Shown piece after piece: positions 3,439-64,000 of a stretch of DNA of 64,000 nt. The DNA is from Hyaloraphidium curvatum SAG 235-1 (taxonomy: Eukaryota; Fungi; Monoblepharomycota), in contig JAIVFI010000033.1 of NCBI GenBank assembly GCA_025558095.1, positions 1 to 64,000 of the forward strand, read 5' to 3'. The notes below the pieces were generated by a model. It had not been told where the DNA came from. It searched no databases and saw only the letters and a program-made list of their open reading frames with translations. Numbering within the stretch: the stretch's first letter is position 1; each line of letters opens with the position of its first letter. Position numbers and translations under genes: made by a program.

Positions 3439-4309
3439 CGCTGCAATCGCCCGATCGCCCGATGGAGGAATTGCCGGTGCCGCGGGGAGTGGGCGGGAGA
3501 GGCCGGTCAGGGAGCGCGGGAGGGAGCGGGCCGCGCGAGACTCACCGCCGGCGTCGCCCTGCCCGCCACCGCCGGCCGCCGGGGACGGCGAGCGGCCGCC
3601 AACCGACCCCGACGGCGGCGACTCGGCCCCGCCCGGGCCCCCGCCTGCCGAGGCCATCTGCTGGTGCGATGCGACGGCTGGTGCAGACGGCCACCTCTTG
3701 CCGTGCGCCCGCCCGCCCGCCGATCGAACCGCCGCGGCCGCAACGCCCCGACACCGGGCACCTGCACTGCGCATCGGCCTTCTCGCATTACGGCTAGCAC
3801 CCCTGATGGGCCCGATCCCCCCGCATCCGCCCGGCTGCGGCCGCAATAGCCCCCTGCCTTGGCCCGAGCTGCCGCCGCCGAGGCCTCGGCCCGCAGCGGA
3901 GACCGAGCCGGCCAGGCGCCCGCTCCGCCCCGCTCGGCGCCTCACCTCGCCCCATCCGCGGACTCGCATCCGCATCCACCGTGTCCGGGGAACTCCGCGG
4001 CGCCGCATCCGCCTCCCCGCCGATCGACCCTCGGCCGACGGGGCCAGACCCGGCGATGCAACCCCCGGGATCGACGCCCGCATCGGCCACCGTCCCCGGG
4101 CTCCCCGTCCCATCGCGAACCGCCGCGGGTCTGCAGCGGATCACATCGGGGTGTCCGCTGCTTCCGCAAGCCGGGGACCGGGAGCCGCCCGCTTTTGCGC
4201 ACCGGCGGCCGGCCGTCGGGCAGATTTGCCCCGGGGTTGCCGCCGGGGACCGACCCTCATTACCTTCGACCCCAAAAATGGCATTGACAGACATCACGAA
4301 ACCAACGAG

Positions 4310-25421: not shown

Positions 25422-25624
25422 TGCCCGCCGGATTCTGCCACAGTGGGTGAGGGAAGCGGTCGACTTCTGCGAAGCGTCCCTATCGCCCCCTGAGTGACTC
25501 GAGAGCCTCGCGCGATCTCTCCGACGTCCGAATCACCCGGCCACCTTTGACCGACGATCGACGAGAAAAGAGGATGAGCGCCGCTTCCGCGCATCAGATT
25601 CCCCGCCACAGCATCACGACAGCA

Positions 25625-42926: not shown

Positions 42927-43608
42927 TCAGACGACCGCGGCGCCCACAGGCACCTCCGTCTGCTGCGTCGGGGCCCGCCGCGACTTTCCAGCTTGCCAAC
43001 TGCCCAGCATTCTCAGCCATTCGTACCCCTCCGACTGAATGTCCAGGGAGACGATCCGCTTGATCTTGCCGTCGGCGTTGAAGACGAGGCTGAGGAAGGA
43101 CGTCGGAGGCCCTGGGAAAGCGTCGTGAATGGGGACGATCTTTCCCGCCACCGCGGGGGTGTGCACCTTGCCGCCCACGACGTCGAGACCTTGCAGGCCC
43201 AGGGAGAACCACTCCCGTATGACGTGTGCGATCGGATCTGTGGATGCTTCGCAGCTTAGCATCCATCGTTAACTCACTTCGGGTTCGGGAGCGGCACAGA
43301 CCTTTCCCGATGAGGCCATTTCCCGACGAGCCGTAGTGCTCGGCTGCAGGTACAGAACCGGGAAAAGATCAGAAGCAGAAGCGGGCATGGCCATGGACCC
43401 ACCGTCGTCGGCGAGCAGCTCCGCAAACGCCTCCGGCCCCTTCTCCAGCGCCGTGCGCACCCTTTCGAACCCCCTCCTTCGCAGCAGGATGTCCGTCGGG
43501 GGGAACCTGCGAGACCTTGGCCTTGTGCTCGCGCAGGGCGTCCGCCCATTTCCTTGTGCCCAGCGCGTCCGGGAATGCCTTGATCTCGTCCTTGAGCGCG
43601 TTGCTCAT
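42927..43608 (-). CDS. Hypothetical protein, weakly NTF2/SnoaL-like (about 3 exons)
   Basis: Segments MSNALKDEIKAF.., ALEKGPEAFAELLADDG.. and SFLSLVFNADGKIKRIVS are separated by intron-like gaps. Confidence 0.45.
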
Positions 43609-43860
43609 GCGGCCGAGCCGAGCTGCGTGCCGCGTCAGCGACCTGAAACACGACATGACAGCAAACGGAGCCCACCCCAGCAATCCGCATTCAGACCACG
43701 CGGGCAACAATGGTGCACGTGGAATGAACAGCTTTGTCAGGGTCCAGACTCGTTTCGCCGAGGTCGAGTCGGTGGCGGAGATCGGGATGGTGGGAGACGG
43801 CGGGGACCGAGTGCGGAATGTTCGAGCGCCGCCCGCGCTCACCCCACTCCGATCCCATAG

Positions 43861-44687
43861 CGGTCGGCTGCAAGCGCATCTGCGTGGACACCAACTACTA
43901 CGAGACCTGTGGGCCCCCTGTTACCGCCGCAGGGATGCCTCCCTGACTCGCTTGTGGCCGCAGACAACCTCCCCCACGTCAAGCTCGTTTCGGTCAAATC
44001 CAACGCCATCACCGACGTCGGCGGCCCCTCGGGCCTGATCACCCTGGCCGACGGCACCACCTACGGCCCCTTCGACGTGATCGTCTCCGCGACGGGCTTC
44101 GACGCCCTCACCGGCGCCATCATGCGGATCAACATCACCGGCCGGGACGGGCTGACGATCAAGGAGGCGTGGGAGGCAGGGCCGGTCAACTACCTTGGCC
44201 TTTTCGTCCGCGGGTTCCACAACATGTTTATCGTCACGGTGGGTTCTGGGCGGGGATGCGGGCCGGCGTGCGGGTGCTGATTGGCGCGCGCGCTGGACGG
44301 CAGGGTCCCGGATCCCCTGGCGTGCTCACCTGCATGATCAACTCGATCGAGCATCACTCGGAATGGATCCTCAGCAGGTGCATCCTCGACATGGAACGCG
44401 ACGGTGTTGCGCGGATCGAGGCGACACAGGAGGCCCAGGACGGCTGGGTCGGCCACGTGAACGCCGTCGCGGACGGGACCCTGTTCCGGTCGTGCGCGAG
44501 CTGGCATTTAGGGGCCAACGTAGCAGGCAAGCCGAGGGTCTTTAGTGGGTGCTCATCCCGCCTGCGATGGAAGTGAATTTGACTCGACTCGCGATCAGTG
44601 CCCCTGATCGGGCTTCCGGACTACGTCGTGCGGTGTGCCGAGGTGCAGGAGAACGGGTACAAATGCCTCGAGCTGACTGCCGCCTAG
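43861..44687 (+). pseudogene. 3' half of a Baeyer-Villiger monooxygenase (CHMO/PAMO type), 5'-truncated
   Basis: GCKRICVDTNYYET, ATGFDALTG, T|GPGSPGVL, SWHLGANVAGKPRVF|MP, with three introns. No N-terminal FAD motif or FxGxxxH fingerprint upstream, and the next gene is about 250 bp away. Confidence 0.75.
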
Positions 44688-44895
44688 AATGTTTCCGTTG
44701 CGCAATAGATCTCACAGCCTCAAAACCACCGCAGTTTGCAAGATGTTGATCCGGCGCCGCCGAAGCGCGAGTAGGCGAAGGCAACCTATGACTGGAGGCA
44801 ATGAAAAAGCCGAGCAACTACCGGGGCCTCAAAAAGCTTACACTAGGCAACGGCAATGACGGTATGGGCTAGGCCGGGTTGGGAGACGCGCAGCC

Positions 44896-45140
44896 AGGGG
44901 GTGTACCGGACCATGCAGAGCATAAGCCCGGCAACTGGGTGACGCGGCGGCGCCGGGTGCGCGCGCGATCGGCGGGACGGGCTGTTGTTGATAGTGTCGA
45001 AGAATCGATGGCTTTTGTAGGACTGTAGCTCGATGCCACCAGGTGGCGCATCTGGGATCGATGCTGGGAGCGCCGCGGCGCCCGAGCTTGCCGCTCTGGT
45101 TACACACGGCCTTTGCGCTACCTCGTGCTCGATCCGCCGG
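44896..45140 (+). repeat. Direct repeat copy 1 (about 240 bp) of 46909-47150
   Basis: Visibly near-identical to the last codons and 3' flank of the 45457-46953 gene (ggtgtacc..accatgcagagcat..gcgctacctcgtgctcgatccgcc). Confidence 0.92.
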
Positions 45141-45456
45141 CGAACACAATGGAAACCCCCGATGGAAGCCAAGGGCTGCCGGTGCAGGATGACAAGACCG
45201 ACCCGGGGCCGTTCCCCTCGTCCAACTTCCCCCTCTGCCTCTGCCTATGGTAGGCATCGTGGTCGCACGAGGGTTGTTCTCCGTAGAATCGTGAGGCGAC
45301 AGGGGACGTAACTCAGATCTCTATCACAGGCGCGACGAGTCATCCGGCCCCGCCGAAGCCCGAGAGAAGGCAACGACCACCTAAGACCGGAGGCAATGAA
45401 AAGATCTTGGAACGCGCGGCAACAGCGATTACCAGGACGCTCGGCGCGGGAGACAA

Positions 45457-46953
45457 ATGGCGCTGTCCGACAAGACGGTGGACCGCACGGCCCTTGCGGC
45501 GCTCCTGCCGGAGGCGGCGTGGCTGGCCGTCCTCCCGCGGGCGCCGCCGGGCCCTGGGCCACGAGGCACGGCGGTGCGCGACCCCGCGGGGCCTGCGCGC
45601 GCCGACGCGCCGATGACCGCCCCGGTGCTGCTCGCCGGGCTGTCGGAATCCTCTCCGATCCTCGCCGCCGCCGCACGGGTGCAGCTTTTCCTGGCGCCGT
45701 TCGCGAGGCACACCATTGCGCGCAATGCTGCGTGGTTCGTCTCCTTCATCCCGCTGCTTGCCCTACCGTGGGTGTTCAACGACGGGTCTTTTGGCACAAA
45801 GGAGCTCGCCGTCGGCACCGCCACCGTGTGCTTCGGGATGCTTGGAGCTACTATGGGGCTTGCCATCTTTGCCGCCTACGGGGCGTCGCTGAGCGTGGCC
45901 CCGGATTACTCGACCCACGCGGCCGCAGGCCTGGTCCGCTGGGTCCAGATGACGAAAGGAAGGATGCCGACGGACCACGGCTTTATCGATCTCCCCCTGT
46001 CGCCCTTGCTCGAGCATCAGGACGGCGATCCGCACTGTCCGTGCAGCAAACAGTCCTGCGCGGGCGGGATTCCGGTTCGGGCCGGGTGGCTGCTCGGCTT
46101 CGAGATCGGGTTCAAGCTTTGCTACACGCTGGCAAATGTGCTCCTCATCAGCTGGACACCGCTGGCGTACCCAAATATCGCGCGTTCGGTGTGGACGACG
46201 CCGTGGCCTGCTTTCTTCGGCGCCTTATACTGGGCTGTGGGTATCTTCGCCATAGTTGCGCCCGTATGCCTCGTCAGGTTTTCCCACAACGTGGCCATGC
46301 TCCGCCTCGCGGAACGCGTTGAGTCCCATGCCATGAACCTCGCCCTGGACTCGATGCTGTCGCCCTACCGGACCGCCGCGGCTTCCGGCCCCTCACACTT
46401 CGACGCCGATGCGCTCCCGCCCCGCCCCGCCGCTTTCGACCTGTACGCCCTCTTTGCTGCGGAATGGCAGCGCCGCGTCCGCCAATTCAACGCCTCCTCC
46501 CCCATGATCGTCTCCACCTCGTGCATGCTTGTCGGCGCGATCCTGAACCCCATTTTCTGTTCCTGCATCCCGGCCCTCTACCTCATGTACATCGGCTACA
46601 ACGGCCTCATGCAGCTCATCGACCTCGTCAACGTGGCCGCGGCCAACGCGACTATCGACCGCATCCGCGGGCAGCTCCTCGACGCCCTCCGCGAACTCCG
46701 GGAGCTGCGCCGGGAGCTCGTCCGCACCGCGCCGCCCGCGCTCCTGGCCCTGCTCGACTCGGACGCCGACGCGCTGGCGCCCTTCCTGGACGTCGAGCGG
46801 TTTCGCGCGAGGCTGTTGGGGATCCCGGTGGTCTACGGCGTGGTGCGGACGCTGCTGGTGACCGTTTTCACGCTTGCCGTGGGGCTGTGGTCCATTCTGA
46901 GGGGACTGGGGGTGTACCTGACCATGCAGAGCATATGCCCGGCAACGGGGTGA
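45457..46953 (+). CDS. Seven-transmembrane protein, candidate gustatory-receptor-like (7TMIC) channel
   Basis: Single 498-aa ORF with seven hydrophobic segments and C-terminal FRARLLGIPVVYGVVRTLLVTVFTLAVGLWSIL. The CDS is well supported; the family call is inference. Confidence 0.75.
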   Translation: MALSDKTVDRTALAALLPEAAWLAVLPRAPPGPGPRGTAVRDPAGPARADAPMTAPVLLAGLSESSPILAAAARVQLFLAPFARHTIARNAAWFVSFIPLLALPWVFNDGSFGTKELAVGTATVCFGMLGATMGLAIFAAYGASLSVAPDYSTHAAAGLVRWVQMTKGRMPTDHGFIDLPLSPLLEHQDGDPHCPCSKQSCAGGIPVRAGWLLGFEIGFKLCYTLANVLLISWTPLAYPNIARSVWTTPWPAFFGALYWAVGIFAIVAPVCLVRFSHNVAMLRLAERVESHAMNLALDSMLSPYRTAAASGPSHFDADALPPRPAAFDLYALFAAEWQRRVRQFNASSPMIVSTSCMLVGAILNPIFCSCIPALYLMYIGYNGLMQLIDLVNVAAANATIDRIRGQLLDALRELRELRRELVRTAPPALLALLDSDADALAPFLDVERFRARLLGIPVVYGVVRTLLVTVFTLAVGLWSILRGLGVYLTMQSICPATG

Positions 46954-47150
46954 CGCGGCGGCCCCGGAAGTGCGCGCGATCGGCGGGACGGGCTGTTGTT
47001 GATAGCCGAGGAATCGATGGCTTTTGCGGAACTGAAGCTCGATGCCGCCAGGTGGAGCATGTGGGATCGATGCTGGGAGCGCCGCCGCGCCCGAGCTTGC
47101 CGCTCTGGTTCCACACGACCTTTGCGCTACCTCGTGCTCGATCCGCCAGC
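46909..47150 (+). repeat. Direct repeat copy 2 (3' end of the 7-TM gene plus 3' flank)
   Basis: Matches 44896-45140. Confidence 0.92.
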
Positions 47151-47172: not shown

Positions 47173-48327
47173 TCACACGGTCTGCAGCGCCGCCAGCAAC
47201 CCGTCCATCGCCGCCCTCGCCCTTTCCACCGCCTCCTCCCACCACACCCCCGGATGCTCCGGCTCCTTCCCGTGCGGCCCCGAGACGAGGACCAGCTCCC
47301 CGTCCGCGTTCAGGTCCACGTACTGCCCGCTTTCGACCCGCGCGGCGGAGTGGTCCGCGTCCGCGGGGGCAAGGAAGGGCTGTTCGAGGGCTTCGCGGGC
47401 GGTTATGCGGGTTTCGGGGTGCGGGTCCAGGGTGGCGCGGAGGAACGCGCGGGCGGCGGGGGACAGCGCCGCGGGGAGGTCCAGCGCGCCGCCGGCGATC
47501 CGGTTGTAGAGCTCCAGCAGGCTCGCCGAGTCGGAAAAGGGGGTCCGTCCCGTGAGGAGGAAGTGCGCGGTACAGCCGGCCGCCCAGACGTCCGCGCCGG
47601 GGCCGTACGGGAGGCCCAACACGAGCTCGGGGGAGAGGAAGTACGGCGTTCCGGTGAATGTGGAGCGGGAAATGGGGGCGGGGGGCGGGAACGCGCCGCG
47701 GGGGGAGGTTGCGACGAGCGTCTGCTCCGATTCGAGGCGCTCCGAGGGGAGCTTGCCGTCGTCAGGGGGCGGCAGCGGGCCGACGTGGGCCGAGCCAAAG
47801 TCGCCGAGGCAGAGGGAGGAGGCAGGGTGGCGGGCGTCGCGGATCAGGATGTTTGCGGGCTTGAGGTCGCGGTGGGCGACGCCCGCGGCGTGCAGGCCGG
47901 CCAGGGCGGAGAACACCGAGACGAGGATGGCCGACGCCTCGGGCTCGGGGAGCGCGCCGCCCCTGCTCGCCACGTACTGCGCCAGGTCCATCCCGCAGTG
48001 CTCGAACACGAGGTAGTGCGACGAGGGCGTCTCGAAGTCGTCCACGAGCGGCAGCACGAGGTGCCGCCAGCCGTCCGCGCCGGGCAGCTCCGCCACGCGC
48101 CGCCGCACCGCGAGCTCCGCCGCCACGCCGACCGCCGCCGCGCCGGGCGACGCCGGCCCCGCTCCGCCCCCCGCCCGCTCGCACTTCTTCACTGCCCGGA
48201 GCCGCGCGGTTGGAACATGGAGCGCCAGCCTCACCGTCCCCTGCGCGCCGCCCCCGAGCACGCCGAAAAACAGGTATTCCCGACGTTTCGCCCGCCCTTC
48301 GGCAAAGGGATCGGCGCCGATGGGCAT
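47173..48327 (-). CDS. Ser/Thr protein kinase
   Basis: LGGGAQGTV, AVK, HRDLKPANIL, DFG, GTPYFLSPE, DVWAAG. The start is approximate. Confidence 0.9.
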   Translation of the reverse strand: MPIGADPFAEGRAKRREYLFFGVLGGGAQGTVRLALHVPTARLRAVKKCERAGGGAGPASPGAAAVGVAAELAVRRRVAELPGADGWRHLVLPLVDDFETPSSHYLVFEHCGMDLAQYVASRGGALPEPEASAILVSVFSALAGLHAAGVAHRDLKPANILIRDARHPASSLCLGDFGSAHVGPLPPPDDGKLPSERLESEQTLVATSPRGAFPPPAPISRSTFTGTPYFLSPELVLGLPYGPGADVWAAGCTAHFLLTGRTPFSDSASLLELYNRIAGGALDLPAALSPAARAFLRATLDPHPETRITAREALEQPFLAPADADHSAARVESGQYVDLNADGELVLVSGPHGKEPEHPGVWWEEAVERARAAMDGLLAALQTV

Positions 48328-48627: not shown

Positions 48628-50055
48628 TCACGTCGTCTGACCGCCGTTGTCGTACAGCTCCCCGAGCCCCGGCGGCATCTCCCCACCAAAGAACCCCCCC
48701 CAATCGACCCTCTTCCGCCCCTCCGGCCCGTTGCCCCCGGCCCCGACGACCCCGGGATACACCCTCCTCGCACGCGGGTGCCTCCCCGCGGCGAACCTCT
48801 GCGCGGCGACCCACCTCTGCACCACCCCGCGGCCGTACGCGCGCACCGAGTCCCCGTACATCGCCGCGGCGATCGACTCCCTCCCCCGCGCGGCGATCCG
48901 CCCCGCGAGCCCGGGATTGCCGCGGAGCATCCGCACCGTCGGGGCGAGCGCGTCCAGGCGGCCGTCGCAGGGGACGTAGTCCCGCCAGGGGACGAGGAAA
49001 TGGTCGTACCATTCGCGGCACGGGGAGAGCTGCCTCACCGTGCAGGTGCCCAGGGCCAGGAGGAGGCGGAGGCGGTCCGCCCAGCCGCAGTTGCCTTCCA
49101 CGTGGAGCGCGATGCGGTACGAGGCGAAGCGCGAGGCGGGCATGGATTCCGGGGGGGTGCCGCGGTACCTTTCCGGGGCAGTTGCGTTGGGAAGGGAGGG
49201 GAAGATGAGGGGGAAGCCGCGGAGGTTGACGTCCAGGGAGGAGGGGTCCGCGAGGGCGAGTGCGAGGAGGCGCTGCCGGCCGGCGATGCGGGGGAAGTTC
49301 TCCGGGGTGATGGCGACGGCGGCCGGGGCGGCGCCGCCGCAGGAGGAGGGGTGGGCGAGAAGCGCGGCGACGTCGGAGGAGGAAGCCAGGTGCGCCAGGG
49401 TAGCGTTGATGTCCGTGGCCGTGCCCCCCTCGCCGCAGCCGAAGCTCGTCCTCCCTGCGGGGGTGCCCCGGAAGACGGCCCTGTTTGCCCGCTCCTCCCA
49501 GGGCGGCGGCGGAATCTCCAGGGCCGGCGGCCTCCACTGCTCGCCCGGCCGCGGCACCGCGCCGTCGACGGCGTGCCTGAAGACGGCCACGGGCACCGAC
49601 AGGTTCGAGCGCCCGCAGGCGACGAGCGAGAGCACCGGGCCCGCGGCCTCGTCGCAGTCGCCCATGCCGAAGCGCATGTCGGCGTCGGGCTCGCCCGGCC
49701 CGTCGGGGAGCGCCAGCAGCGCGTTCGCGAGCCGGACGAGCGCCGGCGGCCACCTCCACGGCGACGTTGCCGAGAGGAGCTGGTCCGCGGGCGGGACGAC
49801 GAGGTGCCACGCGCCGCCGAGGCGCTGCACGCGGAACGCCTCGCGGCCGTCGTCAAAGTCGGACGGCCGGATCCCCCGGGCGGAGATGGCGGCAAAGTGC
49901 GCGTCGAGGACCGCGGAGATGGCCTCGGCGGGGAGCCGCGGGGGGCGCGTGCGTGCGGGCGGCGGCGGGGGCACCGGCAGCGCGGGCAGCGCAACAAACA
50001 GCAAGAGCAGCAGGCAGGCAATCGCGCGGGCTGTCCGCCAGTACACATCTGGCAT
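48628..50055 (-). CDS. Glycosyltransferase family 90 (CAP10/Cxt1/POGLUT-like)
   Basis: Type II anchor; PPWEERANRAVFRG; YRIALHVEGNCGWADRLRLLL; EWYDHFLVPWRDYVP; IAARG. Confidence 0.88.
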   Translation of the reverse strand: MPDVYWRTARAIACLLLLLFVALPALPVPPPPPARTRPPRLPAEAISAVLDAHFAAISARGIRPSDFDDGREAFRVQRLGGAWHLVVPPADQLLSATSPWRWPPALVRLANALLALPDGPGEPDADMRFGMGDCDEAAGPVLSLVACGRSNLSVPVAVFRHAVDGAVPRPGEQWRPPALEIPPPPWEERANRAVFRGTPAGRTSFGCGEGGTATDINATLAHLASSSDVAALLAHPSSCGGAAPAAVAITPENFPRIAGRQRLLALALADPSSLDVNLRGFPLIFPSLPNATAPERYRGTPPESMPASRFASYRIALHVEGNCGWADRLRLLLALGTCTVRQLSPCREWYDHFLVPWRDYVPCDGRLDALAPTVRMLRGNPGLAGRIAARGRESIAAAMYGDSVRAYGRGVVQRWVAAQRFAAGRHPRARRVYPGVVGAGGNGPEGRKRVDWGGFFGGEMPPGLGELYDNGGQTT

Positions 50056-50181
50056 TTTGGTGGGACCGCGGGTGCGGGTTGCGGGAGCGGGCCGTCTGTT
50101 GGCTATCGTAGTTGCAAGAAGGGGCGGCCGACATCGATTAGACCATCCAGACATCGAGTCCATCGAAGCAGGCCCGCATCC

Positions 50182-51657
50182 TCATCCCCCTCCCTCCACC
50201 GCCCGCCCCACCTCCTCCCACAGCGCCCCCCACTCCTCCACCCTCGCGCTCGTACCAGCCTCCCCCTCCAGCCTCCTCACCCTGCCCACCGCCCCCTCGT
50301 CCACGACCGCGCAGTGCTCCCCGTCGGCCCTCCTCTCCCACGCCACCGGCTCGTCCACCCACGCCTCGAACGGCCCCGCCCCCGCGCGGGAGGACGGGCC
50401 CCAGGGCGCGAACCCCCCGTTCCAGTACAGCAGCCGCGGCGCCCCCTCCCCGGGCACCGCCGCCAGATGCGCCTGCTTGGCCGCGCTGCACAGCCGCGGG
50501 GCATCCTGCGCCGGTGCGGGCAGGGCGGGGCGGCACGGGTCCCCCGCCCTGGGGGAGCGCGGCCGCGAGGAGAAGCTCCCGATCGCGGCGATGGGGTGCG
50601 GGGAAAACGCGTAGCTCGCGTTGGCCGAGACGGCGCCGGCGAGGTGCCATCCCATCCACCACGCCTCCTTGTCGCCGTGGGTATGCGCCAAAAGGCCGTG
50701 CCGCGCGCGGGTGGACGCCAGCGCGGCGGCGCCGACGAGGCCGCGCAGCACGGCGGGGCGGCGCAGGTCCAGGAGCACGGCGGAGGACGACATGTCGTGA
50801 AAGGATGCGCCCGTTGCGAGGGGGCGGCGGAGGAGGGCGGCGCGTTCCGCGGGGGAGGGGTTGGGGGGGAGGAGGGAGCGGAGGAAGGCGCGTTGGTGGG
50901 GGCGGCCGCGGCACATTGCGTGGCGGTCCCGCTGGAAGAGGGTGCCTGATTCGGTGTAGAGGGGGTCGGAGAAGAGGAGGGCGGGGGTCAGGAGGAAGAC
51001 GCTGTCGGCGTCGAGCACGAGGACCTCGGCAAAGGAGGAGGCGAGGGCGGCAAAGATCTTGGCGCCGAAGCGCCTGCCCACCGACGCCGGGGCGATGCCC
51101 GTTGGGTCGAAGACGTCCGCGAGCGAGCGCACGTCCAGCGTCAGGTTGAGCTTTGCCGCGGCGCCCTTCAGGTTTCCGACGTCCAGCTCGCCGCCGCCGA
51201 GGTGCCACATCTCGAGCGGCAGGTCCGTCAGCCTCCCGAGGTGCGCGGCCAGAAACAGCGCGTGCCGCAAGTGCCGGTCCGCCAGCGGCACCACGATGCC
51301 GCGTTTGCTGCGCCGGGTGGGGTCCAGCAGCCCGCCGAGGCCGCTTTCTGGCCCGAGGAACGGCAGCAGCACGCGGGCTTCCGCCTCGCGGCCGGCCAGC
51401 CCCGCTGTCCGCCCGCCGTGTGCCGCTCCCCGCCCGCCCTCCCAGCCGTCCAGCAGCGCCCGCAGCCGCACCCCCAGAGCCGCGTGGTGCGCCAGCGGCT
51501 CCCCCTCGGGCGTCAGCGGCGGTGGGGCGACCCCGACCCCGACCACTCCGCCTTCCCCGGCCCCGCCCCCGCCGTCCCGCCCCCGCGACATCAGCCCGAG
51601 CCACGCGAGCAGCACGCAGGCCGCGTGGAATGCCGCGCGGAGGACGGGCGGCCGCAT
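50182..51657 (-). CDS. Glycosyltransferase family 71 (Mnn1/Mnn2-like alpha-mannosyltransferase)
   Basis: Type II anchor; RGIVV; LPLEMWH; AKIFAALASSFAEVLVLDADS (DxD); P..LF..Y...GTLF..D; HGDKEAWW. Confidence 0.9.
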   Translation of the reverse strand: MRPPVLRAAFHAACVLLAWLGLMSRGRDGGGGAGEGGVVGVGVAPPPLTPEGEPLAHHAALGVRLRALLDGWEGGRGAAHGGRTAGLAGREAEARVLLPFLGPESGLGGLLDPTRRSKRGIVVPLADRHLRHALFLAAHLGRLTDLPLEMWHLGGGELDVGNLKGAAAKLNLTLDVRSLADVFDPTGIAPASVGRRFGAKIFAALASSFAEVLVLDADSVFLLTPALLFSDPLYTESGTLFQRDRHAMCRGRPHQRAFLRSLLPPNPSPAERAALLRRPLATGASFHDMSSSAVLLDLRRPAVLRGLVGAAALASTRARHGLLAHTHGDKEAWWMGWHLAGAVSANASYAFSPHPIAAIGSFSSRPRSPRAGDPCRPALPAPAQDAPRLCSAAKQAHLAAVPGEGAPRLLYWNGGFAPWGPSSRAGAGPFEAWVDEPVAWERRADGEHCAVVDEGAVGRVRRLEGEAGTSARVEEWGALWEEVGRAVEGGG

Positions 51658-51797
51658 GGGTGCGTGCTGGCGTCGCACAAACAAGAGGCGGCCCAGCCGC
51701 CAAGGGCTGGAGCCCCAGGACCCAGGCAAGCACCAACGGCCCAATGAGGAACGGCAAGGCCGTCGGCCGCAAAAGAACTTCGGCATCGTGGACACGG

Positions 51798-52462
51798 ACT
51801 GCAAAGCGAAATTGCGGCGCACATTGCGACCCCGTGGTTCGACAAACGCGCTCCTGACTCGGCCGGCCTTTGAAGCCTCGTCGAGTCCACCTTGGACAGC
51901 GGCGCCTCGCATGCCCCCCCATCCTCACCCGTTCTCGGGCGCCGGCAGGTACCCCCACCCCTTCACCGTCCACAGCATGCGCCCCGGGCACGCGGCCCAG
52001 CCCACCTCCCTCGCGCGCTGCGAAAAGGTGCTCCGCCGCGTCGCCAGCGCCCTCGCCGCGCACCCCAGGAGGAGCTGGTCGAGCACCGACGCCGCCGCGT
52101 GGTCGCGCTGGATCGCGGCGTTCCGCTTCATGTTGGCGGGGGCGGTCGGGGGTGGGGAGGAGAAGATCGGGGAGAGGAGGGGGTGCGACCGGAGGCGCGG
52201 GAGGAAGAGCACCGCGGGCGGCGGGTCGGGGGGCGAAAGCCGTGCGAGGTCGGCGCGGAGGAGGTCCCACGTGGAATGTCGGGCATCGCCGCCGATCAGG
52301 AGCACCGCGCGCTCGCGGGGAGTACGACGCCGCCAGGCCTCGGCGGCGGGGAAGGTGCCGGGGACGAAGAGGTCCACGTCGCAGCCGGGCTTGTCTTTGC
52401 CGACCGCCTTGCGGGTGACTTCGCAGGTGTCTCAAAGTCTGCGGAGCAGACGTGCGCGGAGA
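51798..52462 (-). pseudogene. Partial duplicate (about 665 bp) of the 3' end and 3' flank of the O-fucosyltransferase gene (55356-56031)
   Basis: Near-identical DNA encoding AVLLIGGDA...DQLLLGC...RRSTFSQR...PAPENG*. It has a 1-nt indel near 52430 and no 5' part. Confidence 0.9.
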
Positions 52463-52648
52463 CGTGCTGCGCGAGCCCGGCTCGGAAAAAGCGGTCGCGT
52501 GGGCGGGCAGCGCCTCACGCATCGGTGGCCCCCGCCCTCGCCGTCCTCGCATTCGCTGCCGGAATCGTCGAAATTTTCGGCCATCGCGTTGTGGGGGGTG
52601 ATGATGTGGCGATCCCAACGCGCGTCCCCGAAACGACGTGAACAAGCC

Positions 52649-53274
52649 ATGGCTGCCACTATCAGGCTTGCGTGGGCCTCTGCCTTCTCCTACGAAGTCA
52701 ATGCCCCGACTGTGGCGGCGCTTCGGCACTGCGCGGTCCTCATCGATCCGCTCGCCGCACGAGCAGACGTTTTCGTCTCGAACGGGCCTGCGGCAACCGA
52801 TGCGGCCGGTGGTCCTCTCGAAGATTCGGAGGTTGTGAACAGTGGCAGCTACGAGTTGCGCACGAGGGCGGGTGCTTGAGAACCGGAGGCGCAGAGCTGC
52901 TCAGGATCAAGTAGGTCGCCACGTACGAGCAGCTCGCGACCATTGCCCCTTTCAGCAGCGACTGGTGGTTTCACGCCGCCTACAGGAGCGCAAAGGACGA
53001 GCTTTCCATGTGGGAATCCAAGGCCGCCGAGGACGCTGCCCGACAAGCATCGGTGGAGACCCTCCAGGCCGCCGTCAACAGCATGGAGAAGCGCGGAAAA
53101 GCCGATCTCAAATGGACAATTGGCCCGCAGCTCGTTTCTCTCGTAGGAACGGCTCTCACCGTCGGGGATCCTTGGGCGAACAATTTGGTGCTTGCCGGGG
53201 CGGTACTGCAGATTGGGGCGATAGTGGCCACTCTGGTCTTCGTTGGCGTGCGATTGTGGCAGAGCTGGCAGTAG
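52649..53274 (+). CDS. Hypothetical protein with C-terminal TM segments (probably 2 exons)
   Basis: MAATIRLAWASAFSYEVNAPTVAALR.. then, in another frame, LWESKAAEDAARQ..LVLAGAVLQIGAIVATLVFVGV**. The splice is not resolved. Confidence 0.4.
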
Positions 53275-53482
53275 TAAACGAAGAAGTGTCTCTTTTGTGG
53301 TAAAGCATACCTCTTTCACGACGGTTTCCCCGGAATGCGAATACCGGAGTCTGCCTGCAAGGCGCTTCGCAGTCACGAAGGCAGCGTCCTCACTACGCGC
53401 GTGATCAAATTTACACGAAAAGCGAAGCCCTCACTACCCACAGTCTCCACGAACACGGCAGCCTAGGTCGGCCGTGACCAAG

Positions 53483-54216
53483 ATGGCCCCGCAGCGGATG
53501 GCGGACAGCGACCCCTACGCACCGATAGCGTACGTCTGCGTGCCGCAGCGCAGCTGGCGGTGGCACGCCATCGACCTGCGCGGCGTGGCGACCGTCGCGG
53601 ACCTCCGCGAGCAGGTTGCCGCGGCGGTCGGCCACATGCCGCCGCCGCTCAGCAGCGGCCTGGAGCTGCGCAACGCGGGCCCGCTGCCGCCCGACGACCC
53701 GGCGTCCGACGGCGTGTGGGCCGCCGCGGCAACGGTCGACTCGGTCGCCGCGCTGGCCGGCTGCCACCTCGTCGGCCGCACGCCGCTGTTCGGCCTGTTC
53801 CCCCTGGCGGCCCGGCACGAGGCGCCGGCGACGCTGCGGCCGTCGGACCCGCGGGCGGAGCGCAGGCGCAGGCTGGGGACGGGAGGCCCGCCGCCGCGCC
53901 GCCGCCGCCACCGGGCCCGCACGTGCGCGTCGCGCTGGGCGACAGGGAGCGCGACGTGGCCGTCGGGGACGTTACATCGGGGGCCGGGCTCGCGGCGCGT
54001 GTCAGGGAGGCGTTCGGGCTCGCCTCGAAGGAGTACGGGGACCTGGTTCTCTTGGACGCGGACGGACAGCCGGTGCTGCCGGCGGACGCGTTCCCGGACC
54101 CGGACAGGGGGCTTGCGCCGGGCTGCGATATCCGGGCGGGGTTTTGCGCCCCTGGGTTGAAGGAAGCGGGGCCGCTGGTGCTGCTCGGGAGGTGGTGGGG
54201 CGCCGTCGCCGGTTGA
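53483..54216 (+). CDS. Hypothetical protein with two ubiquitin-like-looking segments (frame change near 53870)
   Basis: ATVADLREQVAAA and GLAARVREAFGL..LVLLDADG segments lie in different frames. Confidence 0.35.
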
Positions 54217-54327
54217 GGCTGGACGGAGCCCTTCGGATGCTGCTGCATGGACTTTGGCGGACCTTTTTCATGGGGAAGTGTTTTACTTTGGCAATGTGGC
54301 CTTATCTTCGGCAGTACAGGAACGACG

Positions 54328-54763
54328 TTACCTGTTTCCTTGGAGGAGTGCCAGCACGTCCCTTGCCGTGTCCTCCACGAGCGCCACCAGCTCCTCCACC
54401 GCCTCCCCGAAACCTTGTTCCGCATACGGCTCCAGCACTGCCGCGAGCTTCCTGATCCACCCCGCGACCTCCTCCAGCGCCAGCGGCCCCTCGAACGCCC
54501 GCGCGATCATGCCACGGAGCCCTTCCACTAAACGGCTGCGCCTCGGGCGCGTGCCGCCTGTCAAGCGGCGTCTTGCCTTTGTGGAAGGTGCTGAAGGTGA
54601 AGTATTTGTCGAACGTGATGAAAGCCTGCCTGGCCGCATGCAGGAGCTCAGGCACAACGTCTTTCGGCACGCGATCCAGAGCAACGGCAGGAAGGCACTG
54701 GAGCTCGTGGTTCGCAAGTCTGAGATGCTGCTCCTCTCGATCCGACGCCGTGTTCGAGACCAA
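54328..54763 (-). pseudogene. Helical gene fragment
   Basis: Two protein-like frames joined by a possible short intron near 54537-54586; start not found. Confidence 0.3.
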
Positions 54764-55492
54764 ATCTCAACCTCATGACGGGACCGCTACACCGTGCAAG
54801 CGCGTGCTGCGGACACGCACTTTGGCACGGCGGAAATCGCCAGCCTCGTGTGCGGCTTCACGCACGTGTTCCCTGATGCCGCACGTCAAGATGCAAGCCA
54901 CCGCGCGGACTGCTCGCTGTCCCGGACCTCGCCGCTGCGGTTGGTCCCGGCCGCCTTCACTTGCTCCGCCACCGTCGTGCACTTCGCGAAGCGGACCTCC
55001 GCTCACGGGCGCGATCGATCTCTTCAGCCTTGAGATGCAGTTGCCGCGCCCGCCCGAACCGAGCGACCGCCGGGTTGCTTGTGCAAGGGGTGCGGGGAGC
55101 AAAGGTGGGAATCTTCTTCACCAGCTAGCAGCCAACAGGGGTTTCAAGCGAGACGTCCTGGCAGTGAAGTCACAGTTGCCGTCATGCAAGACGCCTCCCT
55201 ATGGGTGGCCACCCCGACGGAACACGCTGCTCACCCACGGTTGGCCACTACCGGGGGGCCCCTCGCATCTCGGATGGGCCGCTCACACCGGGGGTGGGCC
55301 CCCGCGTCAGCAAAAGAGGTCCGGCAGCGATTCGGAAAAAGTGCGGCAGGCATGTACTGCAAGGCGAAATTGCGGCGCACATTGCGACCCCGTGGTTCGA
55401 CAGACGCGCTCCTGACTCGGCTAGCCTTTGAAGCCTCGTCGAGTCCACCTTGGAAATCGGCGCCTCGCATGCCCGCCCTCCCTCCCCCATCC

Positions 55493-56962
55493 TCACCCGT
55501 TCTCGGGCGCCGGCAGGTACCCCCACCCCTCCACCGTCCACAGCATGCGCCCCGGGCACGCTGCCCAGCCCACCTCCCTCGCGCGCTGCGAAAAGGTGCT
55601 CCGCCGCGTCGCCACGAGCCTCGCGCCGCACCCTAGGAGGAGCTGGTCCAGCACCGACGCCGCCGCGTGGTCGCGCTGGATCGCGGCGTCGGTGGTCATG
55701 TTGGTGGGGGCGGTCGGGGGCGGGGAGGAGAAGATGGGGGAGAGGAGGGGGTGCGACCGGAGGCGCGGGAGGAAGAGCACCCCGGGCGGCGGGTCGGGGG
55801 GCAAAAGCCGTGCGAGGTCGGCGCGGAGGAGGTCCCACGTGGAACGCGGGGCGTCGCCGCCGATCAGGAGCACCGCGCGCTCGCCGCGGCGGAAGTGCGC
55901 GCGGGCCTCGGCGGCGAGAAAGGCGCCCAGGGCCGCGAGGTCCACGCCGCAGCCGGGCTTGTCCTTGCCGACCGCCTTGCGGGTTGCCTCGCAAGTCTGC
56001 TCAAAGTCTGCGGAGCGCACGTGCGCGGAGAGGTACCGCGGGAGCGCGGCCTCGGAGAACTCGGGTGCGGGAGAGGGCAGCGCCGCGGGCCCACCCTTGC
56101 TCCACGCCCCCGGGCCCTCGGGATGCAGCATCACCGCCGCTAGAACCCTCTTCGCGCGGTCCACGAGCCACTCCTTGGGCTTCAATATCCGCGCGGCCTC
56201 CTCGCCGAGCATGACAAACTCTCCCCCCGCCGCGTTCAAGACAGGCGGCCGCAGCCACGCCGGCAGCCTGAACGGAAACGGCACGCCGAAGGTGCCCCGC
56301 AGCGAGCCGTGGTTTGTCCGCGGGGGGTCGATCGGCGTCACGGCGGCGCAGCGGAACGGCCGCGACGGGTAGTGCTCCGGCGGCTCGCGCCCCCTCCCGA
56401 GCGAAAACGCGTCGACGAGGCACGGCACCTCCAACCGCGGCAACCCCGCCGGCTCCTCCATCCTCGCGTCGAGCTCGGGCGGGCCCAGTTCGGCGAACCC
56501 CGGCACGCCGCCGAGCAGCGCCCAGTCGACGTCGTACAGCTCGTCCGGGTCCACCGCGCCCCTGGTCCATTCCGGCCACTGGCAAAAGTACGGGCGCGCC
56601 ACGCGGCAATTGAGGATTTTGTGCGCGACCCAGAGCAGCCGCGCGAGGCCGAGGGCCTGGTTCGAGTGCGCCGCGCGGCCGGTCGAGCAGAGGTGGGCTA
56701 TGAGGGTGCAGCGAGGAGGGATCGGGTGCGGCAGCGGAGGCGGCGGGTACGGCCACTCGGGCGGCAGGGGCGCAGCGGCGTCGAACTCCGGCACGGAGAC
56801 GTTGTGCCACGAGGCGGGGTCCGCGGCGTCCACTCGGAAGGGCGGCGGCGCCACGGTCGGAAAGCGGCCCGACGGCGACGCGCCGAGCAGCAGCAGTGCA
56901 GCGGCCGCCGCTGCAGCCGCCGCAAGGAGAACGCGCAGCCGCGGGACGCCGGCGCGGCACAT
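55493..56962 (-). CDS. GDP-fucose O-fucosyltransferase-family protein (O-FucT fold)
   Basis: Type II anchor; GRAAHSNQ; YLSAHVRSADF (HxR..D motif I); VLDQLLL; RSTFS (motif III). Single exon. Confidence 0.82.
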   Translation of the reverse strand: MCRAGVPRLRVLLAAAAAAAAALLLLGASPSGRFPTVAPPPFRVDAADPASWHNVSVPEFDAAAPLPPEWPYPPPPLPHPIPPRCTLIAHLCSTGRAAHSNQALGLARLLWVAHKILNCRVARPYFCQWPEWTRGAVDPDELYDVDWALLGGVPGFAELGPPELDARMEEPAGLPRLEVPCLVDAFSLGRGREPPEHYPSRPFRCAAVTPIDPPRTNHGSLRGTFGVPFPFRLPAWLRPPVLNAAGGEFVMLGEEAARILKPKEWLVDRAKRVLAAVMLHPEGPGAWSKGGPAALPSPAPEFSEAALPRYLSAHVRSADFEQTCEATRKAVGKDKPGCGVDLAALGAFLAAEARAHFRRGERAVLLIGGDAPRSTWDLLRADLARLLPPDPPPGVLFLPRLRSHPLLSPIFSSPPPTAPTNMTTDAAIQRDHAAASVLDQLLLGCGARLVATRRSTFSQRAREVGWAACPGRMLWTVEGWGYLPAPENG

Positions 56963-57206
56963 TTTATTGGCGACCCGATCGCCCGCGGGGCGGCGTCCTT
57001 CCGTTTCCCTGGGACTCGCATCCCTCCACCGATCACCTGCAATATCTACTTGTAAACGTCGGCGGGAGAACGGGAGAGTGAAGCCGGTTGGCCGCAGGCC
57101 GGGAGCCGTCCATCCCTCGGGACTTGCCCTTTTCCTGGGGAGTTGGCCCAAGGCCTCGCCCACCACCGGCCCGAATTCGGCGGCGAGCCGGCCACTAGCC
57201 CGGACG

Positions 57207-58769
57207 ATGCCGCCGCGCCGCCGGGAGCTGTTATATGGGATTGCCGGCGCGTGCCTGCTCGCGGTGTGGCTCGCCGCGGGGCTGGCGCTGCGGGGGCGAA
57301 CTCCGACCGCGCCGGCGACTCGGCCCCCGGATGCCGCGGACGCGTCCCCGGGGCCGCCCGACGCCGACCCCCAACCGGGCGGTTCCGGGCTCCCCGTGCC
57401 GCCCATCGACGCGTGGTCGCTGAGGGAGAGCGTGCCCCCGCCCCGGCCCGCCGCACCACAACCCCCCGCGCTGCCGCCGCGCACCCCCGGGCCGCCCGGC
57501 ACGGAGCACCTCGACTTTGCCCACGCCGTGCTCCCCAAAATGCCCCTGCCCTCCGTCGAGGAGCTTGCGGAGCACGGCACGCCACCAAACGCCTCGCTGC
57601 TGCCGCCGATGGCCTGGGTCGTCACCGCCACCTTCTCGTACATCCTCAGGCACAGCTACCTCCTCCCGCACGCCGCGTGCTACTCGGCCCTCCGCAACCT
57701 GCCCTTCTACCTGCTGCCGTACGCGGAGGACCACGAGGCCCCGCTGGACTCCCTCCCCATGAAGCTGGCGCCCATCATTCCACTCCTCCCCAAATTCCGC
57801 TGGCTCCTCTTCACCGACGCCGACACCATCGTCGCCGACTCGCGCGCCGACATCTTCCGCTCCTTTGCGGCCCCCGAGGAGCTCCTCGGCCCCCTCGGCG
57901 CCGACGTCGTCTTCCCCGACCGCGACAACGGCGAGCTGTGCTCGTGCTCCTTCCTCGTGCGCAACTCCCCCGGCGGCCGCGCGTTCCTGCGGGCATGGTA
58001 CGGGTGGTGGGGCGACCCGGCGCTCGCGGGGCGCGCGGGCACAGGGACCGACGACGGGATGGGCGGCGACCTGCAGGGCGAACGGCCCCGCTACCGCAAC
58101 GGCAGGATCGGGGACCAGGGCGACCTCCTCGAGCTGGTCCTCTCGGCCGCCGGGCTGGGCGGGTGGACCCCCGTTCCTGACGCCGCGCGCGCGCCGGACC
58201 CGCGGTGGCCCTTCCGGATGCAGGCCCTGCACGCCTCGGGCTTCCCCTCGGGCGACGACGCGCTCCCCTCCCCCGCCTCCCCCGTCCCCGTCCCCCTCCT
58301 CCCGTTCCAACCCCCCGGCAGCGAAAAGGGGAACCTCACCATCTGCAGCAACGCCTTCCACCCCTCGGCATCCACCTCCGCCTTCCTCGCCTGCTCCCGC
58401 GCCGCCCTTGCCCCGCTGCGCTCGGCATCCCCGCGCTCCCCCTCGTACGCCCTGGACCTCCGCCTGCCCGGCGGCCACCGCGCAAGGCTCCGCGCATACA
58501 AGGTCTTTGCCTCGTGGATCCGCTGGGCCGACGGCCGCATGCGGTGCCGCGGGGATTACACCGGCTACCCGTGGTGCCGCGCGGTTCCCGGGGACGCGAT
58601 GCTGGCGGGCAAGGGACTGCACCGGTTCCTCGGCGCGGGGGTGATGGCGTGCGGGGGCGAGTGGACGGTCGCGCCGCGGATGGGGGTGCGGGAGGCGAGG
58701 GGGCTGTTGAAGGGGCTGGGGTGGGAGGCGTATGCGGGGTGCTGGGAGGAGGGGGAGTACGTGTGCTAG
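57207..58769 (+). CDS. GT34 (Gma12/Mnn10)-like galactosyl/mannosyltransferase
   Basis: Type II anchor, Pro-rich stem, WLLFTDADTIV (DxD), SFLVRNSPGGRAFLRAW, DQGDL. Single exon. Confidence 0.78.
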   Translation: MPPRRRELLYGIAGACLLAVWLAAGLALRGRTPTAPATRPPDAADASPGPPDADPQPGGSGLPVPPIDAWSLRESVPPPRPAAPQPPALPPRTPGPPGTEHLDFAHAVLPKMPLPSVEELAEHGTPPNASLLPPMAWVVTATFSYILRHSYLLPHAACYSALRNLPFYLLPYAEDHEAPLDSLPMKLAPIIPLLPKFRWLLFTDADTIVADSRADIFRSFAAPEELLGPLGADVVFPDRDNGELCSCSFLVRNSPGGRAFLRAWYGWWGDPALAGRAGTGTDDGMGGDLQGERPRYRNGRIGDQGDLLELVLSAAGLGGWTPVPDAARAPDPRWPFRMQALHASGFPSGDDALPSPASPVPVPLLPFQPPGSEKGNLTICSNAFHPSASTSAFLACSRAALAPLRSASPRSPSYALDLRLPGGHRARLRAYKVFASWIRWADGRMRCRGDYTGYPWCRAVPGDAMLAGKGLHRFLGAGVMACGGEWTVAPRMGVREARGLLKGLGWEAYAGCWEEGEYVC

Positions 58770-58887: not shown

Positions 58888-59865
58888 TCAAAACACTACG
58901 CGGTAGTCCACCATCCTCAAAAACTCGACCTCCATCCTCCGCAGCGCCGCCTCGGGGATCCCGCTCGCGTCGCTCCACCGCGATATCGAGTGCCGCGAGT
59001 CGTCGAGCACCTTTGTGCTCAGCAGGAGGGAGACGGCGGTGACGGCGTAGTGGCTTCCCCACGCGAAGCTGTCCTGCGTGCTGACCCGCGCACGCAGGGC
59101 GCGGACGAGGTCCGACGCCCGCGCGACGGCGTACGGCGGCGGGTGCATCAAAGTGAGCAGCCGCCGTAGGTAGGAAGCAAAGTGCGGGCTGTCCTGCGAG
59201 AAGAGCGTCGCCGCCCTCGCGTGCGGCCCGGGGCCGGCGCTGAACGGCGACGGCGTGGGCGGCTGCGGGTACCACGCCGTGTACGCGGTCGAGGCGCACA
59301 TGGAGACGAGCAGGTCCACGGGGTAGGGGTCGCCGTCGGCCACGTCCCAGAACACGGACGAAGTTTGGGTGCCGGGAGTCGAGGGGGAGCGGTCCGGGGG
59401 TGTGGGCGAGGAGAAGTATGTGCCCGAGGATGCGCGCGAGGCGAGGGTGCGGCCCATGTCGCAGGTGGAGGCGGCGAGGGTCGATGTGGGCGAGGCGCCG
59501 GTCAGGGCGGACCAGTCGAATGCGTCGGCGAGGTCGTCCGCGGGGCGCCTGCCCCCGGAGCAGTCTGGTTTGGTTGCCGGCAGGACGCCGGACGCCCTCG
59601 AAGCGGGCCTCAGGGGGGCCGAGCCGGGGCCGCCGAGCCTCCTTCTGGGGCTGCCCTTTGCCGCGCCCGCCGACTCGGTGCGCCGCCTGCGCCGCGGCGA
59701 GCGCCCGTCGGCCTTGTGCGCTTCGACGACGGGGAGTCCATAGGACGGCGCGGCAGCCCTGGGCGGCCCGCGCCGGTCCTGTTCAGGCGGGCGGCTCGCC
59801 GCGGGGTGCACCGCCCACGCGAACGGCGCCGGCGGCGGAAACACGGCACACTGCGCGGCGGCCAT
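58888..59865 (-). CDS. PHO80/PCL-family cyclin
   Basis: YLRRL; SLLLSTKVLDDSRHSISRWS..SGI....LRRMEVEFL..VDY. Confidence 0.85.
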   Translation of the reverse strand: MAAAQCAVFPPPAPFAWAVHPAASRPPEQDRRGPPRAAAPSYGLPVVEAHKADGRSPRRRRRTESAGAAKGSPRRRLGGPGSAPLRPASRASGVLPATKPDCSGGRRPADDLADAFDWSALTGASPTSTLAASTCDMGRTLASRASSGTYFSSPTPPDRSPSTPGTQTSSVFWDVADGDPYPVDLLVSMCASTAYTAWYPQPPTPSPFSAGPGPHARAATLFSQDSPHFASYLRRLLTLMHPPPYAVARASDLVRALRARVSTQDSFAWGSHYAVTAVSLLLSTKVLDDSRHSISRWSDASGIPEAALRRMEVEFLRMVDYRVVF

Positions 59866-63431: not shown

Positions 63432-64000
63432 TCACTTGGATCCGGCGGCGATTGCGGCCCCGAGGACCCCGGCAGCCGCGCCCAGCCGCCCTGGCTTCAC
63501 GGAAACACCGATCGGAGCCAACGAGGCGTCGATGCCCGCCCGCACGGCGTCCCAGTAACCATCTGCAATGCCGCCCAGCACATGCAGCATGCTAGGGCGG
63601 AACGACTCGGCGAAGCCGCGGAGATAGTCGCCGAGAGTCGCGGCGAAAAGCTCCAGAGCCTCGCGCCCCGCGACGGGATCCAGATCACGAACGGCATCGG
63701 CGTCAACCACTTCAGGCGACGCCAAACCCGCGCTGCGCAGCAACGTCGCCAGACCGCGCACGCTCCAGGTGTCGTCGGCGATAACCGTTCCGCCATGGCT
63801 CTTGCGATCCAGCTCGGCTCCCCAGGCACCGATCATGCCCGCTTTCTTTATCCATGCCGCGGTGTCGACAATGCCCGAGTAGATCCACCCATTTTCTGGC
63901 ACCCCAGCCCCGCTGGAGAGCACTTTGCCGGCTTGGACGAAGCACGAGCCGAGCCCGGTTCCGAGGGTGATGGCCATCGCCTTTTGGGACCCGCCCAGAC
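63432..64000 (-). CDS. ROK-family sugar kinase, C-terminal part (5' end outside the window)
   Basis: AITLGTGLGSCFV; SVRGL; F.P..LHVLGGIA; AGVLGAA. Confidence 0.82.
   Translation of the reverse strand, partial: LGGSQKAMAITLGTGLGSCFVQAGKVLSSGAGVPENGWIYSGIVDTAAWIKKAGMIGAWGAELDRKSHGGTVIADDTWSVRGLATLLRSAGLASPEVVDADAVRDLDPVAGREALELFAATLGDYLRGFAESFRPSMLHVLGGIADGYWDAVRAGIDASLAPIGVSVKPGRLGAAAGVLGAAIAAGSK

Follow-up and report, generated by a model that had tools for sequence, protein, structure and literature searches.

Contig C33 (JAIVFI010000033.1, 564 kb) of the fungus Hyaloraphidium curvatum SAG 235-1 opens with a stretch of 64 kb, referred to here as the window, that carries genes for four glycosyltransferases (GTs) of different families at positions 48628-58769. 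Their proximity is not a product of chance. What might bring four such genes together? The explanation that we tentatively prefer, at somewhat less than even probability, is that this is a real, non-random four-family cluster whose enzymes act on one lineage-specific glycan. Such joint function is plausible, and the argument for it is one of linkage. The four enzymes would work in turn, in the secretory pathway, on a single product, for example a mannose backbone or branch bearing fucose and one or two other sugars. A shared divergent promoter and a short tandem spacer would aid their co-regulation.

Four genes in ten kilobases

The GC content of the window is 62-76%, and genuine reading frames are recognizable in it by the GC content of third codon positions (GC3), which is about 0.9. 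Each of the four GT genes is one continuous open reading frame (ORF) of 475-520 codons with a GC3 of about 0.9. Each encodes a protein that starts with a short basic tail, continues with a single hydrophobic segment within residues 4-30 and then enters a proline-rich stem. This is the layout usually found in type II Golgi transferases, and a Golgi location would be expected from it.

The genes had been noticed in a first-pass annotation of the window. All four lie at the positions claimed there, fold and family searches agree that they encode GTs, and the description of them as single-exon genes with N-terminal type II anchors is borne out by continuous frames with one N-terminal hydrophobic segment apiece. 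Two distances had also been estimated, about 126 bp between the GT90 and GT71 genes and about 245 bp between the head-to-head fucosyltransferase and GT34 genes. The first was measured as 126 bp and the second, between start codons, as 244 bp. The gene order is GT34-like, POFUT-like, GT71, GT90, with the first two genes diverging and the last three pointing the same way. No two of the four arose as tandem duplicates. The features of this region are as follows.

48628-50055, minus strand: GT90/CAP10-type glycosyltransferase gene, 475 aa (PF05686, 43.9 bits)
50056-50181, minus strand: spacer of 126 bp from the GT71 stop codon to the GT90 ATG
50182-51657, minus strand: GT71/Mannosyl_trans3 gene, 491 aa (PF11051, 70.9 bits)
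51793-52514: direct repeat R1, which holds a fucosyltransferase relic
52515-55350: inserted or segmentally duplicated block
55351-56084: direct repeat R2, consisting of the 3' end of the intact POFUT-like gene and downstream sequence
55493-56962, minus strand: POFUT-like gene, 489 aa, putative member of the GT-B fucosyltransferase superfamily
56963-57206: divergent intergenic region of 244 bp between start codons, a candidate bidirectional promoter
57207-58769, plus strand: DUF273/GT34-like GT-A glycosyltransferase gene, 520 aa

The starts of the GT90 and GT71 genes were set at the Met that precedes the anchor (50055 and 51657, respectively) because the in-frame ATGs further upstream (50163 and 51912) sit in sequence of low GC3. 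An alternative genetic code, or a fused polycistronic ORF, was also considered, since the kinase gene on the left flank, the GT90 and GT71 genes and the relic are all in one frame. This idea was rejected because a separate Met, with an anchor behind it, opens every gene, and because GC3 drops between genes. An NCBIfam search of the four proteins assigned no name, and an exact database look-up of a window protein returned no entry.

Chance as a cause of the linkage

How surprising is it to find four GT families within 10 kb? A census was made by six-frame family scans of the whole genome (31.9 Mb, 55 contigs), which give counts that are lower bounds. It found 12 GT90, 8 GT71, 15 GT34, 6 PF10250, 6 POFUT-like and 1 DUF273-like loci, along with 7 GT8, 7 GT32 and 10 GT47 loci. 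These 72 GT loci of nine classes were then placed uniformly, with variation in gene density ignored. At least four classes fell within 10 kb in none of 20,000 trials, and at least three classes did so in 1%, figures that have to be read in the knowledge that the locus was picked post hoc from a large scan. The analytic expectation for four families in 10 kb is about 1e-4, and it would be about 8e-3 were the genome to hold 200 GTs. In other words, the families are moderately expanded, and not so numerous that four members in 10 kb would be expected, which is the way in which the first-pass annotation had thought that its proposal might fail. The cluster at 48628-58769 is the only four-family cluster among the nine scanned classes. 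Chance is rejected as the cause of the linkage.

The four enzymes

The family calls made for the two tandem genes at the left of the cluster stand, both proteins scoring above the Pfam cut-offs. The GT90 protein passes PF05686 with 43.9 bits against a cut-off of 24 (E 1.9e-11; 41.9 bits in the genome scan). The alignment spans only model positions 174-342 of 396, the N-terminal half being divergent within a continuous ORF, and the gene is the second-weakest among the 12 genomic PF05686 matches. Its anchor has a Kyte-Doolittle hydrophobicity of 2.76 at residues 12-28. The GT71 protein passes PF11051 with 70.9 bits against a cut-off of 22, over model positions 2-258 of 273. The 491-aa model is identical to database entry P0042, and an intact DxD motif (LDAD) can be read from the sequence of that entry in 'VLVLDADSVF'. 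Judged by its sequence, this gene is a member of the Mnn-type alpha-mannosyltransferase family.

The POFUT-like gene, which had been called an O-FucT gene, has no PF10250 match even at E<=10 and no Pfam match at all. It is absent from the six PF10250 matches of the genome, and its five paralogues lack a PF10250 match at E<=1. A language-model feature search ranks O-FucT clusters first (0.96, with 204 of 256 features shared), and the ten best named matches of the protein in this search all belong to one clan. The paralogue alignment was used to build an AlphaFold model, which has a mean predicted local distance difference test score (pLDDT) of only 56, with 70-80 in the C-terminal half. When this model was compared with the PDB by Foldseek the top 12 matches were all fucosyltransferases (E 1e-3 to 1.5e-2; NodZ, POFUT2 and POFUT1), and FUT8 came just below. 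VIA-align, which is independent of Foldseek, gave POFUT2 a Z of 11.3 over 249 residues, and the remainder of its top six were CePOFUT2 (11.1), FUT8 (9.9), POFUT1 (9.9), NodZ (8.8) and AtFUT1 (8.3). An Atlas shape search with the model also put POFUT2 in first place.

The protein has three motifs that bear on its identity, namely 'HSNQ' near the N-terminus, 'YLSAHVR' (HxR) and 'D-x15-STFS' near the C-terminus. The last two are kept in four of the five paralogues in the paralogue alignment. In POFUT2 the catalytic Arg is R294 and GDP-fucose is bound by D371 and S387-F389 (PMC10481521). The HxR and D-x15-S-T-F of the window protein agree with these residues in pattern and spacing, as mapped by inspection and not by alignment. 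We file the gene at superfamily level because the feature search, the fold matches and the motifs agree while PF10250 finds nothing: it would belong to the fucosyltransferase superfamily (GT-B) and not to PF10250. The O-FucT call is upheld in its fold and superfamily, but not as membership of the Pfam family.

By the searches that were run, the POFUT-like family is found only in this genome. The protein and its profile gave chance-level matches only against the sequences of solved structures. Metagenome scans with a two-sequence POFUT-like alignment and with the GT71 protein returned no relative. A word-index protein search with the POFUT-like, GT34-like and GT71 proteins found each of them itself only, a result that does not imply absence because Pro/Ala words probably swamped the candidates. 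Six genes make up the family (on C33, C25, C28 and C35, with an inverted pair on C14), and the paralogues are also intronless. The closest of them, with 41% identity, is at C25:425572-426894 (L001:4270-5733, minus strand). It has lost both HxR and S-T-F and is probably not an active fucosyltransferase. The C14 genes, at 43400-44917 (plus strand) and 49334-50839 (minus strand) (L002), form a divergent inverted pair 4.4 kb apart. Their synonymous divergence (dS) is 0.15 and their ratio of nonsynonymous to synonymous divergence (dN/dS) is 0.42, so that they are about as old as the duplication that left the relic in the window.

The fourth gene is also divergent. Its protein stays below the Pfam cut-off for GT34 (PF05637, 13.2 bits against 23, E 0.073), a PF05637 scan of the genome at E<=0.1 misses the gene, and the protein has no PF03314 match of its own. 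It has no paralogue in the genome. Among 1.8 billion representatives there are 27 relatives, the best with 36% identity over part of the length. DUF273 (PF03314) is found in 21 of 21 aligned homologues and GT34 in 8 of 21. A profile of the homologues (alignment A2) reaches the solved GT34 structures A64R (E 2.9e-4) and XXT1 (E 2.3e-3), and the best Foldseek matches of the predicted structure (pLDDT 70) are XXT1 (E 1.3e-6) and PBCV-1 A64R (E 1.2e-5). In the DxD motif (TDAD), none of 22 sequences departs from D204 or D206. The gene encodes a GT-A enzyme on the DUF273/GT34 branch, for which 'DUF273-like' is a nearer name than 'GT34-like'. The earlier label of GT34-like agrees with the homologues and the fold, but not with the PF05637 score.

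A relic and an inserted block within the cluster

Two direct repeats of about 0.72 kb with 84-93% identity (51793-52514 and 55351-56084) lie between the GT71 gene and the 5' part of the POFUT-like gene. R2 is the 3' end of the intact POFUT-like gene together with about 140 bp of downstream sequence. R1 contains about 130 bp of downstream sequence and the relic (51928-52431, minus strand), which corresponds to the final 168 codons of the POFUT-like gene and has 84% amino-acid identity to it (tblastn). The relic has one TGA upstream, lacks any N-terminal part and sits directly upstream of GT71. Comparison with the live gene gives a dS of 0.16 and a dN/dS of 0.51, as expected with one copy drifting.

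The block between the repeats is about 2.9 kb long. Over about 2.1 kb it runs collinear with C21:78936-80960 (81% and 68% identity), and parts of it are also present on C4. The block has been copied either to or from C21. It holds one small GC3-rich gene (53474-54216, plus strand), an ORF with no Pfam match, and is otherwise non-coding. The small gene has two apparently similar halves, an 81%-identical copy at C21:79966-80960 and a partial copy at C4:553010-553330. An indel of 2 bp in a GC-rich low-complexity run separates its two full copies, as a result of which their frames differ in the middle.

The first-pass annotation did not pick up that the array of four genes in 10 kb is broken by this block. 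In the repeat unit, the upstream region of GT71 is connected with the 3' end of the fucosyltransferase gene, and for this reason the simplest history is that of an ancestral array that was contiguous and about 7 kb long, into which a later segmental insertion came and duplicated its flank. The fucosyltransferase gene was formerly directly upstream of GT71, and this favors a cluster with a common function.

A second pair of direct repeats (44897-45141 and 46908-47150; 92-93% identity, 2.0 kb apart) flanks a gene for a seven-transmembrane protein to the left of the kinase gene, which shows that there have been several recent local duplications in the neighborhood. The contigs of X1, the only public sequencing run found, follow the assembly, repeat included. 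X1 has no contig over 56900-57300, the candidate divergent promoter, though both sides are covered, and this may be a filter or an assembly gap.

A shared glycan or a shared neighborhood

Several observations count against the idea that the four enzymes act on one glycan, in addition to the post hoc choice of the locus. Outside of it GT genes of different families form 2 pairs at 10 kb or less, when about 1.4 would be expected, which means that linkage of these nine classes is not a general rule in the genome. One of these pairs is an O-FucT gene adjoining a GT32 gene on C6, and the other is GT34 and GT32 in one open frame on C5 (C5:195189-196307, plus strand; both matches, that to GT32 as Gly_transf_sug, fall in a 722-aa frame that may be a two-domain fusion). 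The cluster carries an unrelated block in its midst, which has been tolerated. Evolution of the POFUT-like family is fast, with a dN/dS of 0.4-0.5 between young duplicates, and the neighbors of its five paralogues include no recognizable GT (among them are an amine oxidase, a major facilitator superfamily transporter and a kinase, the others being unknowns). Of five contexts in which distant DUF273 homologues lie, one, in Saitozyma, is GT-rich and none has a GT90, GT71 or POFUT-like gene. The three promoter regions share one 7-mer, GGACTCG, which is not significant when compared with shuffles (mean 0.9, maximum 8). Run X1 covers coding and non-coding DNA evenly at a depth of about 20 and reads as DNA, not as transcripts. 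Lastly, Pfam finds no nucleotide-sugar transporter, sugar-activating enzyme or regulator between positions 47 and 60 kb.

What if the linkage is real but there is no shared pathway? In this scenario, which we rank second and again hold to be somewhat less probable than an even chance, a rearrangement-prone stretch would have gathered divergent lineage-specific secretory genes, each acting on a different glycan. The stretch holds several young rearrangements, with the 0.72-kb repeats and relic, the C21-related block and the second repeat pair all falling within 12 kb. Two of the genes have diverged beyond the reach of their Pfam models, and the GT90 gene is near the bottom of its genomic list. 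The fast evolution of the POFUT-like family, the promoters without a significant common word and the position of the paralogues outside clusters are all as this scenario would have them. However, a 10-fold regional concentration of GT genes would still leave the expectation for such a cluster below about 0.1, on top of the failure of random placement to produce one. Gathering by local duplication also sits poorly with the lack of tandem duplicates among the four, and the arrangement of one head-to-head pair and one tight tandem pair is typical of co-regulated genes.

Perhaps, instead, the cluster is a remnant in which one or more genes are decaying or non-catalytic. A dead fucosyltransferase-like fragment does lie inside it, the closest POFUT-like paralogue has lost its HxR and STF, two genes are under the Pfam thresholds, and the single run X1, being DNA-like, gives no evidence of expression. 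Yet the four ORFs run uninterrupted with the GC3 of host genes, the copies in the window retain intact DxD and GDP-fucose-type motifs, and the predicted models recover complete GT-A and GT-B folds. We regard decay as improbable. The least likely explanation, one to which we give very little weight, is joint horizontal transfer of the four genes, for example from another eukaryote or from a giant virus with a glycosylation set. It would fit the lack of introns (other GT genes, and those for GDP-mannose dehydratase (GMD), match in pieces, consistent with introns), the nearness of the GT34-like fold to chlorovirus A64R and the very small number of homologues found. However, composition and GC3 are like those of neighboring host genes, the genome holds many further members of both GT71 and CAP10-type GT90 along with five POFUT-like paralogues that are themselves intronless, and the searches that were run found no donor-like sequence.

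The sugar specificities proposed in the first-pass annotation (Xyl/Glc for GT90, Man for GT71, Fuc for O-FucT and Gal/Man for GT34) are family-level guesses. Supply of GDP-fucose is plausible in this organism because GMD exons are present, with a sum of about 466 bits against a cut-off of 415 at C18:323759-325065 and a second copy on C24. This probable supply speaks for joint function, as do the gene geometry, the intact motifs and the fact that the four chemistries differ. A more detailed version, that the locus is an operon-like co-regulated module for a fucosylated and xylosylated or galactosylated mannan-type surface glycan, maybe with a sugar supply of its own, we consider unlikely, although less so than decay or transfer. 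The sugar supply in question concerns an ORF of 610 aa that lies 4.7 kb beyond the cluster, at 63432-64000 and continuing to C33:65264 (L008:4432-6264, minus strand). It matches a mannose-6-phosphate-isomerase cupin with 24.8 bits, under the cut-off, and a ROK sugar kinase with E 1.4e-7, both of which are weak matches. Its product could be a source of Man-6-P for the synthesis of GDP-Man or GDP-Fuc.

Surroundings of the cluster

Three further features of the window were recorded, two of which flank the cluster.

833-3541: Fungal_trans domain
47173-48327, minus strand: Ser/Thr protein kinase gene on the left flank (Pkinase PF00069, E 9e-37; start taken at Met 48327)
58888-59865, minus strand: PCL-type cyclin gene on the right flank (PF08613 Cyclin, E 1.5e-6)

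The Fungal_trans domain, like the GT71 and PCL-cyclin families, is an indication of a fungal genome. The first-pass annotation had said that the kinase and the cyclin may or may not belong to the cluster. Their membership is not supported, and nothing ties either gene to the cluster or to glycosylation. The idea that the window is subtelomeric was also discarded: it has no telomere repeat, and the contig begins inside an ordinary gene. At 24387-25532 (minus strand), 23 kb from the cluster, there is a borderline match to polysaccharide pyruvyl transferase (PF04230, 26 bits against 25.3). Elsewhere in the assembly two pairs of matches, C21:180450-180980 with C49:26103-26633 and C33:155529-155900 with C53:1460-1831, have identical scores and lengths, which suggests that C49 and C53 are duplicated or haplotig assembly pieces.

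Comparison with known systems

To our knowledge, the genes for eukaryotic Golgi glycosyltransferases are almost always scattered, and assigning the enzymes to glycans needs laborious genetics. A fungal cluster for a glycan does exist in Aspergillus fumigatus, where the genes for galactosaminogalactan (GAG) synthesis encode an epimerase, a large multi-pass synthase, a deacetylase and hydrolases and are linked and co-regulated. GAG and other fungal metabolic clusters resemble the window locus in that non-homologous genes are physically linked in a fungus. However, GAG mixes enzyme types, whereas this locus has type II Golgi-type transferases only, with no precursor enzyme, transporter, modifier or regulator. 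The families themselves have well-known members that act sequentially in the Golgi on mannan or capsule, namely Cap10 and Cxt1 of Cryptococcus (GT90) and Mnn1, Mnn2 and Mnn5 (GT71) and Mnn10 and Mnn11 (GT34) of yeast. These enzymes and the window proteins have families and type II architecture in common. The Cryptococcus and yeast genes are dispersed, though, and only distantly related to those of the window, whose proteins score 44 and 71 bits with Pfam or stay under the threshold.

In terms of arrangement, a closer parallel comes from an animal. Clusters of putative Golgi GTs from different CAZy families, including DUF273 genes, have been described in Caenorhabditis elegans, and their significance is unexplained (PMC7614267). 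As in the window, single-pass putative GTs of different families adjoin one another, with the DUF273 type among them. The nematode clusters differ in having many same-family paralogues in the operon-rich genome of an animal, whereas this locus has four single members in a fungus. For the POFUT-like gene the comparison is with POFUT1, POFUT2 and the plant O-FucTs. Its best structural matches are to the GT-B fucosyltransferase fold, and it has HxR and D-x15-S-T-F motifs of the GDP-fucose type as judged by inspection. These are PF10250 proteins, whereas the POFUT-like gene and its five paralogues have no PF10250 match. Fungal O-FucT subfamilies have been described (PMC10481521).

The closest named homologue of the GT34-like gene is GFZ52422.1 of Saitozyma sp. 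JCM 24511 (L005, BCLC01000030.1:52691-75416), and it too lies among GT-type genes. Its neighbors are a fusion of a nucleotide-sugar transporter (TPT) with GT15, a DUF7402 gene, a weak GT47 and a faint GT_PLOD. However, no GT90, GT71 or POFUT-like gene is present there, and at 37-39% identity orthology is doubtful. The Saitozyma locus may represent a GT cluster in its own right, in this case in a basidiomycete yeast. The searches that were run returned no close relatives for an analysis of synteny, and no conserved linkage was detected with the distant DUF273 homologues, which do not have these neighbors. A compact cluster in which four Golgi-type families are represented by one member each, and nothing else, is a variant on the known kinds of cluster.

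The claim of a cluster is statistical, and the proposal of a common glycan is a well-founded hypothesis. If the more detailed version of it is true, then gene position could serve in this genome to predict which Golgi transferases share a glycan. A fungal genome with linked Golgi-type transferases would offer positional clues to pathways, in the way that bacterial polysaccharide loci do. It would give the first genomic context for two orphan groups, the POFUT-like family that is invisible to Pfam and the fungal branch of DUF273. In the more detailed version, the two enzymes in question would found new fungal subfamilies, POFUT-like and DUF273-like, with the first functional context for DUF273. 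A further implication would be that a poorly studied, early-diverging fungal lineage has a surface glycan with fucose that is still undescribed.

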